Source: Vitrella brassicaformis CCMP3155
Taxonomy: Eukaryota; Protista; Chromerida
DNA: 64,000 nucleotides
Reading direction: 5' to 3'
Assembly: GCA_001179505.1 (NCBI GenBank)
Contig: CDMY01000562.1
Location: 248,001-312,000 of the forward strand
The position numbers and the translations under genes are program-made. How positions within the stretch are numbered: the stretch's first letter is position 1; every line of letters starts with the position of its first letter. Under the pieces are notes generated by a model. That model was not told the DNA's origin, ran no database searches, and saw nothing but the letters and a program-made list of their open reading frames with translations. This document shows, piece by piece, positions 15,223 to 31,809 of this stretch.

Positions 15223-15837
15223 CTAGTCCTCCTCCTCCTCCGTCCAACACGTGCACCCCTTGGATCCCGTCCACGCACACTCGCCGCTGAAGCCGTCCTT
15301 AGTCTTGCAGTCCTGAAATTCGCACTCAGCCCTTGAGAGTCCCTCACAGGCGACACACGTCGTCATGCGGCCTACATGGACACATATACACACATACAAG
15401 ATGCATGTATTCGGGTGGGCAGTGAACAGGCATACCGGTGTCTCCCAGGTGGGCAGGGGGCTGGGCCGGGGTGTGTGAGACCATCGCCTTCGGGGCTGGA
15501 TTTGACAAAGGGACGGAGGAAGGGGGAGGGGACAATGTGTGCAGCTGGATGGGGGAACTGTATGTATGTGCGAGGCTCCCTTCTGGACTCCAGTCACCTA
15601 CCGGCGTGTCGCTTCAGAAGTGCCGACAGCCGAGCAGAGGGAACTGCACAGTCCAGTCACCTACCGGCGTGTCGCTTCAGAAGTGCCGATAGCTGCGATT
15701 GATTTCTCACCGTGCTGGTGCAAAGCTGTGTCGATGTGCTGGCGACGCGTACTGGTGGCCGTCACGCACAGGGCGATGGCACCGACGGCCACACACAGGG
15801 CGAGACAGGCAGAACGGCCCCTCATCTCTGCACTCAT
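15223..15837 (-). CDS. Secreted Cys-rich peptide gene, copy A (signal + pro-exon(s) + defensin-like module)
   Basis: Phase-1 exons: MSAEMRGRSACLALCVAVGAIALCVTATSTRRQHIDTALHQH / xPSARLSALLKRHA / APKAMVSHTPAQPPAHLGDT / GRMTTCVACEGLSRAECEFQDCKTKDGFSGECAWTGSKGCTCWTEEEED*. Confidence 0.7.
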
Positions 15838-16063
15838 CCCAGACAGACAGACAAAAGACAGACCAAGGGACACACACAGCAAAGAGGAAGTCGTTCAGTC
15901 ACGCCTGCTGCAGCTGTCAGTCTGTCTGTCCGCTTGCCTGTTGTGACTCTTGTGCGTTGAGACGGAGGCTCAGCGCTCGGGACGTCGAACCGAATGAATA
16001 GATGGATGGATGGATGGTTTTGACGAAAGATTCAGAATCACTCGACGCACCGGAACGGGATGG
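15560..16063. repeat. 5' block (upstream region, signal exon, pro-exon) shared by peptide genes A, B (~17780-18281, direct) and C (~28722-29200, inverted)
   Basis: Near-identical sequence visible by eye, e.g. gacgtcgaaccgaatgaatagatggatgg and gtgtcgcttcagaagtgccga. Confidence 0.9.
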
Positions 16064-16532
16064 NNNNNNNNNNNNNNNNNNNNNNNNNNNNNNNNNNNNN
16101 NNNNNNNNNNNNNNNNNNNNNNNNNNNNNNNNNNNNNNNNNNNNNNNNNNNNNNNNNNNNNNNNNNNNNNNNNNNNNNNNNNNNNNNNNNNNNNNNNNNN
16201 NNNNNNNNNNNNNNNNNNNNNNNNNNNNNNNNNNNNNNNNNNNNNNNNNNNNNNNNNNNNNNNNNNNNNNNNNNNNNNNNNNNNNNNNNNNNNNNNNNNN
16301 NNNNNNNNNNNNNNNNNNNNNNNNNNNNNNNNNNNNNNNNNNNNNNNNNNNNNNNNNNNNNNNACAGCGCAGACGTCCCTTTCTCGTTGCATGCGCAACA
16401 GGGGGGCCCGCCGCCGTCTCGCGGGATGAGGGTAGGTGGAGGGGGTTGGGTGTAGTCCGATACACGCTCGCTCATTCGAAAAGGAGGAGAAACAGCCGAG
16501 AAATCACCAACTCAATCATGGGGGGTAAGTAA

Positions 16533-16616
16533 GTGGCTGTGATAGGCGGAGGGCCTGGCGGGTATGTGGCGGCCATCAAATCGGCCCAGCTGGGACTCAA
16601 GACGGTGTGTGTGGAG
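16533..16616 (+). pseudogene. 84-nt fragment of DLD exon 1 ([28 protein letters not shown])
   Basis: Matches 18469-18552 except for two synonymous changes (GGA/GGC, AAA/AAG). It has no in-frame start and is followed by the 3' flank of peptide gene B. Confidence 0.9.
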
Positions 16617-28926: not shown

Positions 28927-30000
28927 ATGAGTGCAGAGATGATTGGCCGTTCTGCCTGTCTCGCCCTGTGTGTGGCCGTCGGTGCCCTCGCCCTGTGTGT
29001 GACGGCCACCAGTACGCGTCGCCAGCACATCGACACAGCTTTGCACCAGCACGGTGAGAAATCGCAGCTTTCACGACGGCACCCATGCGTGAATCAGTCA
29101 GCATTGCAATGTGTAGTTACCTCTGCTCGGCTATCGGCACTTCTGAAGCGACACGCCGGTAACTAAGTGACTGGACAGACCGGAGCCTCGCACACACATA
29201 CACACAGTCCCCCCATCCAGCTGCACACATTGTCCCCTCCCCCTTCCTCCGTCCCTTTTGTCAAATCCACCCCCGAAGGCGATGGTCTCCCACGCCCCGG
29301 CCCAGCCCCCTGCCCACCTGGGAGACACCGGTATGCCTGTACGTTCACTGCCCAGCCGAATACCTGCATCTTGTATGTGTGTATGTGTGCATGTAGGCCG
29401 CATGACGACGTGTGTCACGTGTGAGGGCCTCCCAAGGGCTGAGTGCAAGTATCAGAAGTGCACGACTAAGGACGGCTTCCGCGGCGGGTGTGTGTGGACC
29501 GGATCCAAGGGGTGCACGTGTTTGACGGAGAAGCAGGCCCGTATGGACAAAGGTACAGACAGACAGGCAGACAGACAGGCAGATGACGTACGTCAAATTG
29601 TCATGTTTTCTGTCTGTCTGTCTGTCTGTCTGCCTGCGTGGCTGTCTGTCTGGGTACGTATCCCCGTGGCTTCAGGCCAGTGTTTGGACGACGACGAGTG
29701 CACGAATAAGGGCCAGTTCTGCTACCACCACGTGCACAACCAAGAGTTCCTCCACACGCAAACAATCGGGAAAGGCAAGGCAAGCGATAGATAGAGGTCA
29801 AGAAACCCCCTCTCTCTGATTGCTTGACTGCACGGTTGCAGGCGGCGGGCGGCCATTGGGACGCCGGGTGCGGCAAGAAATTTGCCTGGTCGAAGGAGCA
29901 CCCCTGCGACACCGGCCTCAAGTGCAAGAGAAAGACCTCGACCGTATGGGCGGTCGTCCCTATCGTGGAAATGGTTCACGTCTGCCTCAAGCCTGAGTAG
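28927..30000 (+). CDS. Secreted Cys-rich peptide gene, copy C (signal + pro-exon + defensin-like + colipase/Dkk-like modules fused)
   Basis: MSAEMIGRSACLALCVAVGALALCVTATSTRRQHIDTALHQH / VTSARLSALLKRHA / GRMTTCVTCEGLPRAECKYQKCTTKDGFRGGCVWTGSKGCTCLTEKQARMDK / GQCLDDDECTNKGQFCYHHVHNQEFLHTQTIGKGK / AAGGHWDAGCGKKFAWSKEHPCDTGLKCKRKTSTVWAVVPIVEMVHVCLKPE*. Confidence 0.75.
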
Positions 30001-30149
30001 TTAGCAAGCTCGCCAGCCGAAGGGCCAAACACCACACCACACAATTAGCCGGCACACTGTTAGCATAATCATCGGGGGCTGTCAAAGTTGGAAATCCACA
30101 AATCCAAAATCCTGACCTATCCTTCCCAGAGTTTTGATACATCTGCGCA

Positions 30150-31809
30150 ATGACGACGTTCAAGGCTCTTATAGCGTTCGCCGTATGCTTCCTGGTGATC
30201 TCGACCACCGCCGCGGCCATCGGTAAGCATGGGCTATGCAGCCAGCACAGAGGGATTCAGGCAGCGTCAAGGTTGATTGCATGGGCCCCCACCGCCAGCC
30301 ACGATGTGCCTGGGCTGCCGACACGTGCGCGGCCTGCTGCGCTGCCTGCTGTGTTGTCTTTTCAGAGGAAGACTACGACAGCTGTGAGGATTCGAGCTGC
30401 GCCACGGATGGCGGGTTTGGATCCATCTCGGCTGGCAACTCCAGCAGCCACAAAGACTACAAAAACGGTGAGGAACGGTAAGGGGGCAAGGCTGCATGGC
30501 TGGATGCATCGAGAAGGGCAGATCTATCCATCCCCCTGGTTGTATCCATCCATCCATCCAAATCCATCCATTCACTCACTAAGGAGGAAGTTACTGTCTT
30601 GTCTGCCCCGTGTGTGCAGGTGCGTCGTTTGTCGGCCGCACTCAGGAGCAGATCCAGACCATGGCCGCCAATAAGCACGGTGCGGCCGGGAGGGGGCAGG
30701 GAGGGGTGGCCGGTGCGCATGGACGTAAAAACACCCAGACTTATCCGTGGAACACTGTGTGTGTGTGTGTGTGTGTGTGCAGGTGTTGCATTGGGTGTGG
30801 GGGAGTTGTCGGTGTTGCAGCAGCAGATTCAGACCGGCAAGGCCATCCTGCAGTCGGCCACCAAACTCTACACGGCAGCCGACTCGCTCAAGGCCACCGC
30901 CAACGACCTGAGGGCATCAGCAGTGGCGACCATCGATGACATAGCGGACCGCATGGGCGCCATCATGGGCATCGAGCCGGGCACCATGGGTACACAATGT
31001 GTGATGCACCGGAGGCCTTGCATGCAGCGCATATGTGCGTGTGTACTGTCCATTTTATTTGGCTTGTGTTGCTTTGTTTGTTGCCCGATGGATGAATCGA
31101 TGGATGGATGGATGTGTTACGTTGCGTTGCGTTGCGTTGTGTGCAGCCATGGACACCGACCAGCCTGTGGGCCGGGTGCGCACGCCCATCCATCCCTCCA
31201 TGCCACACACGACATGTTGTCTTGCCTTCCTGCTTTCCTGGGTCTCCGTGTGTGTTTTCAGGGTCGAGAGTGGGATCCGTATCAGCCGAATCCCTTAGCG
31301 GATGAACCTGATGAAAACTGGCTAGCGGCAAAGATACTGTGTTCAAAGCGGACAAGCGGGAGAAGCAGGAGGAGAAGCGGGCCCGTATCAATAGAGGTAC
31401 AGACAGACAGGCAGACAGATGACGTGCGTCAAATTGAGATGTTTCTCTGTCTGTCTGTCTGGGTCCGTACCCCCGTGGCTTCAGGCCAGTGTAAGGACGA
31501 CGACGAGTGCACGGAGAAGGGCCAATTCTGTTACAAGCACGTGTACAGCCAGGAGTTCCTCCACACGCACTCCGTCGGGATATGCAAGGCAAGCGAAAGG
31601 TAGAGGTCAAGAAACCCCCTCTCTCTGATTGGTTGACTGCATGGTTGCAGGCGGCGGGCGACCATTGGGACCGGTGCAGCATCAAGAAGAAGCACCCCTG
31701 CAAGGCCGGCCTCAAGTGCACGGAAACGAAACGGCCTCAACCGTTGGCGGTGCTGGCCCTAGATGGCTTGTCACCGACCATCCACATCTGCCTCAAGGAT
31801 GGCGAGTAG
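30150..31809 (+). CDS. Secreted chimeric gene, copy D (different signal peptide + acidic and helical exons + colipase/Dkk-like module)
   Basis: MTTFKALIAFAVCFLVISTTAAAI / EEDYDSCEDSSCATDGG...KDYKN / GASFVGRTQEQIQTMAANKH / GVALGVGELSVLQQQIQTGKAILQSATKLYTAADSLKATANDLRASAVATIDDIADRMGAIMGIEPGTM / AMDTDQPVGR / GREWDPY... / GQCKDDDECTEKGQFCYK...GICK / AAGDHWDRCSIKKKHPCKAGLKCTETKRPQPLAVLALDGLSPTIHICLKDGE*. One junction shows a phase conflict. Confidence 0.6.

Follow-up and report, generated by a model that had tools for sequence, protein, structure and literature searches.

Modular cysteine-rich genes of the chromerid Vitrella brassicaformis probably encode a recombining, fast-evolving family of secreted proteins

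We analyzed 64,000 nucleotides (nt) of genomic DNA from Vitrella brassicaformis CCMP3155, positions 248,001 to 312,000 of the forward strand of contig CDMY01000562.1 (assembly GCA_001179505.1), referred to below as the window, to which all coordinates apply unless another contig is named. The window carries four paralogous multi-exon genes, named A to D, which are spliced and transcribed and form two inverted clusters. A (15223–15837) and B (16960–18054) lie on the minus strand and C (28927–30000) and D (30150–31809) on the plus strand, and the clusters are transcribed outward from a 10.6-kb spacer containing a dihydrolipoamide dehydrogenase gene (about 18425–20780, plus strand) and other genes. 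Together with two copies on other contigs, E and F, these genes probably represent a Vitrella-specific, recombining and fast-evolving family of secreted disulfide-rich proteins, two of whose members in the window are damaged. A first-pass annotation, made from the DNA letters alone, had pointed to four related genes in two inverted clusters, as repeat mapping, exon models and transcripts now confirm. It had also taken the family to be undescribed, in agreement with our full-text literature search, in which no paper discussing the four proteins was found, though they had already been deposited as CEM23211.1 (A), CEM23212.1 (B), CEM23217.1 (the 3′ part of C) and CEM23218.1 (D), each under the label “unnamed protein product” and with automatic names only in UniRef.

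The genes combine a small set of modules in different ways. We propose that they belong to a recently expanding family of small modular proteins entering the secretory pathway and that they would have been assembled from a few cassettes: a leader cassette S1, comprising a promoter, a putative signal peptide and a basic “pro” exon; a leader cassette S2, comprising a putative signal peptide, an acidic cysteine pair, an exon encoding SFVGRTQE and a helical exon; and cargo modules of three kinds, termed Def-like (seven cysteines), Dkk-like (eight cysteines) and F-type. Gene A is made up of the S1 signal exon, the pro exon, an exon named 2b and the Def-like module; B has the S1 signal and pro exons followed by a mini-exon, a linker and the Dkk-like module; and C carries the S1 signal and pro exons, possibly exon 2b, and then both the Def-like and the Dkk-like modules. 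D and E share one architecture, in which the S2 signal is followed by the acidic cysteine pair, the SFVGRTQE and helical exons, the mini-exon, the linker and the Dkk-like module. In F, the S1 signal and pro exons precede the start of exon 2b, which is fused to a helical region and another cysteine-rich domain.

Across the six genes, 20 of the 26 introns are in phase 1 and the remaining six in phase 0. The phase-0 introns all lie inside modules: they are the one between mini-exon and linker and a GC–AG intron within the Dkk-like module of B, C, D and E. The latter uses the same donor (aag/gcaagc) in all four copies (17140–17201 in B, 29780–29841 in C, 31589–31650 in D, and 1436–1497 of L003 for the copy on another contig). 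The pro, 2b, Def-like, acidic, SFVGRTQE and helical exons are bounded by phase 1 on both sides (class 1-1), and the mini-exon/linker pair and the Dkk-like exon pair are both entered in phase 1. The earlier proposal of phase-1 module boundaries therefore holds for every boundary between modules, and since all these boundaries are phase-1 introns, recombinants would stay in frame.

Three of the junctions at which modules were brought together can be traced at the nucleotide level. Intron 2 of B starts like the corresponding introns of A and C up to the position of the 2b acceptor (...catacatacagt) and from that position continues like intron 4 of D (ccattttatttggc...) into the mini-exon; B is a chimera in which one phase-1 intron was joined to another. 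In C, the Def-like exon closes with 25 nt (gag aag cag gcc cgt atg gac aaa g/gtacag) that have their homologue at the end of the linker exon in D, E and B; the junction is therefore exonic, within the last 25 nt of the Def-like and linker exons. In F, the shared sequence stops 27 nt into exon 2b, so this junction is exonic too. Swapping of modules through phase-1 introns, as had been suggested, thus accounts for one of the three traceable junctions, that of B, and not for those of C and F. We propose that new combinations would have arisen by segmental duplication and by unequal or illegitimate recombination between paralogs, with B formed by the intron-to-intron join and C and F joined within exons.

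Repeat mapping and the surroundings of the genes are informative about the duplications. A 5′ block of promoter, signal exon, intron and pro exon is 97–98% identical between A (15701–16063), B (17820–18281) and, inverted, C (28744–29161), and a 3′ block with both Dkk-like exons is 86–93% identical among B (17032–17326), C (29639–29949) and D (31448–31689). Upstream of A lies the relic of a dihydrolipoamide dehydrogenase exon (16533–16616, plus strand), a copy of 84 nt that is 98% identical to 18469–18552 and shows how A's cassette originated: about 2.2 kb of the 5′ region of B were duplicated in tandem, and the signal cassette was copied together with the divergent promoter region. The E locus holds D's gene, its 3′ flank and about 90 bp that, in the window, sit just upstream of an assembly gap in the 5′ flank of C, an arrangement which suggests that the C unit was inserted before a D-type gene. 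The 3′ flank belongs to the duplicated unit: it is shared by B (16616–16959, minus strand), D (31810–32391) and E, and these are its only three places in the genome. The modules could have been parts of a known transposable element, which the first-pass annotation had listed as a way in which its proposal might fail; this reading is rejected, as the shared 3′ flank is confined to the B, D and E loci.

Splicing was assessed with four public runs mapped to positions 28700–32000, that is, to the C/D cluster only. The contigs of X3 and X4 continue through the introns and are DNA-like, and those of X1 and X8 are spliced and RNA-like. The models of A and B are based on database proteins and cross-mapped contigs, and two JGI transcript contigs (L040 and L041, sample 3300017297) added the junctions of A and repeated those of D; X1, X8 and the JGI sample possibly share common underlying data. 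Joined translations of the exon models were used for frame checks, and single exons and database proteins for searches and folding. The spliced transcript contigs support most of the junctions, including the GC–AG intron in the Dkk-like module, and the exon models yield stop-free translations that correspond to P0011 for A, P0001 for B and P0014 for F, while the model of E agrees with the 3′ part of P0016. Four of the six genes (A, B, E and F) are intact and expressed, whereas C and D are transcribed but damaged. Mis-assembled haplotypes are an unlikely source of the copies, which differ in architecture and are represented by copy-specific DNA contigs in X3 and X4, two runs that are possibly the assembly's own data. 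The JGI proteins P0009 and P0016 were rejected as full-length isoforms, their contigs being chimeric paths from A to C to D to E, and individual junctions alone were used from them.

Gene A (CEM23211.1, 121–125 amino acids) consists of a signal exon (15711–15837), the pro exon (15602–15643), exon 2b (15436–15495) and the Def-like exon with the stop codon (15223–15371). Its model gives P0011, and a complete open reading frame (ORF) of an MMETSP transcript encodes the identical protein; the pro exon and exon 2b are matched at 100% in L040, and the junction between exon 2b and exon 3 was read, with A-specific variants, in X1 and X8. The signal, pro and cysteine-rich modules that had been proposed for A are present, but the proline-rich exon 2b had been missed and the assignment of the last module to the defensins finds no significant support. 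Within intron 1, the pro exon recurs as a tandem copy in truncated form (15665–15692); a tandem duplication of 63 nt (15652–15718) took over most of this intron, and transcripts use only the downstream pro copy. A second A-type protein, P0013 (MMETSP, UniRef A0A7S1KCR2), has the signal and pro exons of F (MIGRS..., VTSAGLSALLKRHA) and is either another assembly chimera or a product of gene conversion between 5′ cassettes.

Gene B (CEM23212.1, 207–211 amino acids) has six exons: signal (17928–18054), pro (17823–17864), mini-exon (17638–17693), charged linker (17419–17545), Dkk-like a with its GC donor (17202–17305) and Dkk-like b (16960–17139). The model includes P0001 exactly, and its exon order agrees with the one originally proposed, from signal and pro through the linker to the Dkk-like module. 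The junction between linker and Dkk-like exon was read in an X1 contig with nine intervening letters, and the JGI transcript protein P0008 is an isoform of B with an in-frame retained intron.

The exons of C are the signal (28927–29053), pro (29117–29158), 2b (ending at 29330; 29208–29330 if an upstream AG is used), Def-like (29397–29552), Dkk-like a (29676–29779) and Dkk-like b (29842–30000). The 2b acceptor, which reads ...tccag/cccc in A and F, is AC in C (29269–29270); the upstream AG (29206–29207) would yield an in-frame exon 2b of 123 nt, and skipping of 2b would likewise be in frame. The deposited model, CEM23217.1, begins at a Met within exon 2b and covers only the 3′ 155 amino acids, and none of the readable transcripts connects the signal cassette of C with its Def-like exon. 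An RNA contig of X1 joins exons 3, 4 and 5 in frame (29552/29676 and, across the GC–AG intron, 29779/29842). The codon of the fourth cysteine of the Dkk-like module encodes Gly in C, and the same change creates a second ag/gcaag donor 5 nt upstream, after 29774. The choice between the two donors differs, the in-frame one being used in X1 and the frameshifting one in L040. The annotated order of signal, pro, Def-like and Dkk-like modules is thus supported for the joining of exons 3 to 5, but has to be amended for the additional exon 2b, its lost acceptor and a Dkk-like module with only seven cysteines. A spliced contig (L040/L041) runs unbroken from the last exon of C across the 149-nt spacer into exon 1 of D (29842–30222), as a result of either read-through co-transcription or overlapping untranslated regions (UTRs).

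Gene D (CEM23218.1) consists of the signal-2 (30150–30222), acidic Cys-pair (30366–30467), SFVGRTQE (30620–30679), helical (30783–30989), mini (31147–31175), linker (31262–31396), Dkk-like a (31485–31588, GC donor) and Dkk-like b (31651–31809) exons. Five junctions were read in X8, X1 and L040/L041 (30222/30366, 30989/31147, 31175/31262, 31396/31485 and, at the GC–AG intron, 31588/31651), and two others (30467/30620 and 30679/30783) were deduced from the length of the transcript contig and from L040. The linker exon is 135 nt long in D; in B it has 127 nt and in E 103 nt, two lengths that equal 1 modulo 3. As transcribed in all three transcript assemblies, D shifts frame in this exon, and its Dkk-like exons are read out of frame up to a stop at 31760–31762. 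The linker of D resembles that of B in one frame in its 5′ part and in another in its 3′ part, so the internal frameshift is genuine. The deposited model (P0010) regains the frame by splicing 31383 to 31490, with a donor and an acceptor that occur in no transcript assembly. All exons expected for D, with its new signal, helical, linker and Dkk-like parts, are hence present, but the transcripts do not read the Dkk-like module in frame, and E alone has this architecture in intact form. The deposited models of both C, which is truncated, and D, whose frame depends on unsupported splice sites, need revising.

The genome (72.7 Mb in 1064 contigs) was searched in six frames for the modules. The S1 signal exon has four copies (A, B, C and F), the last Dkk-like exon also four (B, C, D and E) in addition to diverged ones, and the Def-like exon two. 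The search for copies and combinations that had been advised thus revealed two more architectural copies, E as an intact D-type gene and F as a sixth architecture, both on other contigs, as well as a wider family of leaders. The helical exon of D matches about 17 further loci, and the 13 that were examined contain acidic, SFVGRTQE and helical exons of 40–63% identity. Their cargo varies: a diverged Dkk-like module followed by two F-type cysteine modules on contigs C677 and C391, F-type modules on C989, and a 2H-phosphoesterase domain on C182 (155400–159700; protein P0017, precomputed Pfam matches PF13563 and PF07823). The SFVGRTQE/helical leader of D and E thus appears, by comparison of these loci, to be a general N-terminal cassette, which might serve in sorting, as a pro-domain or in oligomerisation, and its association with different cargo elsewhere indicates that, within a larger set of Vitrella proteins, the window genes form the youngest branch. 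In the diverged paralogs (C677:28300–32500 and C391:5700–9900), the Dkk-like module is 38–41% identical to that of E. A C-x-x-G-(L/W)-x-C motif is common to the F-type module and the second half of the Dkk-like module, of which the former may be a distant relative. No relatives were found outside Vitrella: a phmmer search with the last exon of B against 1.84 billion representative proteins returned only B and C, apart from five matches to repeat proteins (fn3, LDL-receptor class A and similar) that were discarded as spurious, and word-based searches with B, the module of A and the helical region of D gave Vitrella proteins only.

The cargo exons have changed faster than the non-coding DNA around them. 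The four genes with a Dkk-like module (B, C, D and E) were aligned over a region that begins with the intron preceding it and extends past the stop, which gives six pairs that are not independent. Identity is 94–98% in the intron within the Dkk-like module, 86–91% in the upstream intron and 87–96% in the first 80 nt of the 3′UTR; it is 76–84% in Dkk-like exon a (98% between B and D), 63–88% in the first 90 nt of exon b, and 49–88%, with indels, in the loop between the last two cysteines. Pooled, the Dkk-like exons diverge at 17–33% of sites versus 6.5–10% in the flanking introns and 3′UTR, with an odds ratio of exon to non-coding divergence of 2.3–4.5 in all six pairs (Fisher p 3e-3 to 1e-9). 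All cysteines are conserved apart from one that C has lost and one whose position has moved in D, in accordance with the earlier observation that the mature modules have diverged with most cysteines kept, and the net charge of the Def-like module changes from -6 in A to +5 in C. The ratio of nonsynonymous to synonymous divergence (dN/dS, Nei–Gojobori) is 0.5–1.2 for the Dkk-like module, computed pairwise on about 50 synonymous sites, and 0.73 for the few sites of the Def-like exon (A versus C). The dN/dS check that had been suggested for the mature modules therefore finds variable exons, but ratios not clearly above 1. We read this pattern, from the alignments, as diversifying change of the cargo exons on what would be a fixed disulfide scaffold; a scaffold of cysteines kept while the exons outpace nearby non-coding DNA would be the pattern of diversifying selection in extracellular binding, defence or toxin-like peptides.

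The fold of the cargo modules was approached by sequence and structure comparison. The Def-like module has seven cysteines with the spacing 2-7-4-9-7-1, in which a C-x4-C stands in place of the C-x3-C of defensins, and it contains the G-x-C and C-x-C motifs. It resembles the CS-alpha-beta peptides (defensins, long-chain scorpion toxins and plant SCR-like proteins) in its size, in these two motifs and in a W-x-G stretch, and differs from them by its C-x4-C helix motif, by seven cysteines versus six or eight and by the acidic character of the module in A. Its best matches are weak: scorpion alpha-toxins in a phmmer search of the PDB (E 0.13), Pfam Toxin_3 (E 0.14–0.16) and SCRL (E 0.17–0.27). 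The core is predicted, with a predicted local distance difference test score (pLDDT) of about 74, to form one short helix and three strands, for which Foldseek found no credible fold (E at least 2, template modeling (TM) score about 0.26, r.m.s. deviation 5 Å). In a wide VIA-align search, the best match was the fungal antifungal protein NFAP2 with a Z-score of only 2.4; a shape search of the atlas gave unrelated matches or noise, and a language-model search gave no usable match. The name “defensin-like” thus finds no significant support in sequence or fold (Toxin_3, SCRL, PDB, Foldseek, VIA-align). UniRef names A automatically a [quoted passage not shown]. This identity finds no support: the Pfam model of high potential iron-sulfur proteins (HiPIP, PF01355), to which control genomes respond, has no match at E up to 10 in A, in C or in the whole Vitrella genome, and no HiPIP chain is found among the 25 weak PDB matches of the Def-like module.

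The Dkk-like module carries eight cysteines in B, E and D and seven in C, with the spacing 5-6-17-10-11-5-25 in B and E. UniRef names B automatically as a Dickkopf N-terminal domain protein. The best Pfam match, to Dickkopf_N, was obtained for copy C only (E 0.007–0.07, 17.1 bits against a cut-off of 25, positions 1–21 of 51); the Dickkopf_N, DIKK C-subdomain, Prokineticin and Colipase profiles have no significant match, B, D and E giving nothing. A genome-wide scan with PF04706 does not list the Dkk-like loci of this family, and single-sequence and profile searches of the PDB with the module returned nothing. The AlphaFold2 model of the module is unusable (pLDDT 46), which makes its Foldseek list noise. 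In the ESM Atlas, the nearest clusters by features are prokineticin, colipase-like and Dickkopf (0.75–0.80, rated as leads only), and the nearest by shape are DKK and prokineticin models (TM 0.58–0.60 over about 74 residues, the Atlas model having a pLDDT of 0.54 over the whole protein). The earlier label “colipase/Dkk-like” accordingly has sub-threshold Pfam and language-model leads in its favor but no significant support. With the colipase fold (Dickkopf, prokineticin/MIT1/Bv8 and colipase) the module shares a small domain behind a signal peptide, an opening C-x5-C-x6-C with acidic residues and G-x-F-C, and C-x-x-G-L-x-C near the end. It differs by its eight cysteines (seven in C) versus ten in five disulfides, by fusion to unrelated modules and by its host, an alveolate alga, the named relatives all being animal proteins. 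The module may work like a colipase-fold domain and is at most a candidate member of that superfamily.

Several points speak against a family of secreted, diversifying proteins and have to be weighed. Two of the four copies in the window, C and D, are damaged; the transcript assemblies are chimeric across paralogs and therefore do not link the exons of C and D into phased full-length isoforms; the Def-like module has an odd number of cysteines; and the stretch that follows the putative S1 signal resembles a transit peptide. A dN/dS of only 0.5–1.2 is also compatible with relaxed constraint, and the exon dS is itself above the divergence of the introns. The latter leaves room for a mosaic ancestry, with older exon lineages standing among introns and UTRs that were homogenised by gene conversion, in which case the exon differences would likewise be under preservation. 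We consider it unlikely that the genes are a functionless, decaying cluster of recent duplicates whose combinations are by-products and whose transcription comes from the promoters carried along. The frameshift of D in all transcript assemblies, the loss in C of an acceptor and a cysteine with the gain of a frameshifting alternative donor, the duplicated truncated pro exon of A, pairwise dN/dS near 1 and the lack of homologs outside the species would fit such decay. However, A, B, E and F have complete ORFs with all splice sites and cysteines intact, and simple neutral decay would not be expected to make exons diverge far more than the introns and UTRs next to them. In addition, the more distant members with the same module elsewhere, at 38–41% identity, have kept their cysteines, which argues for long-term retention. 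In our reading the secreted family is instead in turnover, with intact and damaged copies side by side.

The N-termini look like signal peptides by hydropathy, as had been proposed: the best 15-residue Kyte–Doolittle mean is 2.45–2.85, followed by small-residue motifs at the putative ends VTA/T (S1) and AAA/I (S2). The 49 residues after the putative S1 signal contain 18% Ser/Thr, 16% Ala, six Lys/Arg, six His and two Asp/Glu, a composition that would suit a transit peptide, and the acquisition of targeting leaders through exon recombination is a known idea. S1 might on this account be a bipartite plastid-targeting leader spread by recombination, with a plastid or periplastid cargo of which the module of A could bind a metal or an iron-sulfur cluster, as its UniRef name would imply. 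In many red-lineage plastids the transit peptide has Phe at position +1. The S1 leader has no such Phe, but this residue is only weakly conserved in Vitrella transit peptides (PMC6668581), so its absence is not decisive. A plastid destination is nevertheless doubtful. The Pfam HiPIP model is silent, as described above, and the leader of B soon turns highly charged and acidic. The same Dkk-like cargo also stands behind the S2 leader, which after its signal is strongly acidic (eight Asp/Glu in 36 residues) and not transit-like; this argues for the ordinary secretory route, of which small cysteine-dense domains are typical as well.

The pro exon encodes a dibasic KR in all four S1 cassettes, and the first-pass annotation took it as the site of a Kex2/furin-like cut that would free defensin- or colipase-fold toxins or antimicrobials from a prepro-peptide. 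We regard this as unlikely: conserved signal and pro exons in front of a variable mature part are found in conotoxin genes too (PMC3862624), and there are the weak leads to scorpion-toxin, SCRL and Dickkopf models, but the KR lies 24 residues (A and C) to about 65 residues (B) before the first cysteine, within a basic segment that has much Ser, Thr, Ala and His, and does not adjoin the mature domain, its conservation is uninformative among cassettes that are recent copies with 93–98% identity, the pro region is basic and not the usual acidic counterpart of a cationic peptide, the Def-like module of A has a net charge of -6, and the defensin fold is unsupported. A toxin, antimicrobial or signalling role can at most be conjectured. 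Secretion of cysteine-rich proteins is thus the reading we retain, and its products, with their disulfide bonds, would act outside the cell and bind variable targets there, for instance microbes, other cells or wall matrix.

Two assembly gaps lie next to the genes. None of the exons of A to D reaches into either, and the reading frames are therefore independent of both. The first (16064–16363) falls in the 5′ flank or 5′UTR of A and starts 226 nt upstream of its ATG (15837). The spliced contig L040 matches the 5′ flank of A at 100% up to 16063, and its nt 1–27 extend at least 27 nt into the gap with a sequence like the homologous flank of B, which indicates that the gap interrupts only the 5′UTR or promoter of A. 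The second (28374–28673), with poly-C on both sides, ends 253 nt upstream of the ATG of C (28927) and is located where the C unit breaks the synteny known from the E locus. Microsatellites of the types (CAGA/CTGT)n and (GGAT/ATCC)n occur in introns and flanks beside nearly every module boundary (15995–16018, 17330–17365, 17575–17610, 17700–17730, 28750–28775, 29555–29650, 30545–30575, 31090–31120 and 31400–31460). Such repeats are very abundant genome-wide, where they are seen as depth spikes; they may promote recombination between paralogs, and none is exactly at a mapped breakpoint.

The family can be compared with two known kinds of system. Conotoxin genes of one superfamily have conserved introns, even where the toxins that they encode differ in framework (PMC3862624). 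The Vitrella genes are similar in that the 5′ cassette, introns and 3′UTR are near-identical while the exons with the cysteine framework change several-fold faster and keep their cysteines. They differ in belonging to a unicellular photosynthetic alveolate without a venom apparatus, in forming a tiny family, in having modules recombined between genes and not just point-mutated, and in a dN/dS not clearly above 1. Class 1-1 exon shuffling has been described as practically restricted to Metazoa (PMC8001218). The phase-1-bounded modules, from the signal-peptide boundary on, and the intron-to-intron chimera of B resemble the metazoan process (Patthy), whereas the host is a chromerid, two of the three junctions are exonic, and the events are recent, within one family and traceable at the nucleotide level. 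We therefore see in the family not a new kind of system but a variant of kinds already known, in an organism where it was unexpected. A bolder reading, which we advance tentatively, is that a free-living chromerid has invented extracellular proteins in the animal style: class 1-1 modules, including a colipase/Dickkopf fold otherwise restricted to animals, might have been recombined behind shared leaders and have diversified faster than their own introns, to give a variable secreted repertoire directed at microbes or hosts.

The breakpoints of exon shuffling in a protist can here be read base by base, including one clean intron-to-intron chimera. A, B, E and F offer concrete targets for secretome work and for the structures of two orphan cysteine-rich domains. 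A divergence pattern like that of venom or defence proteins in a photosynthetic relative of the apicomplexan parasites would, if the proteins are extracellular, bear on the origin of host interaction.

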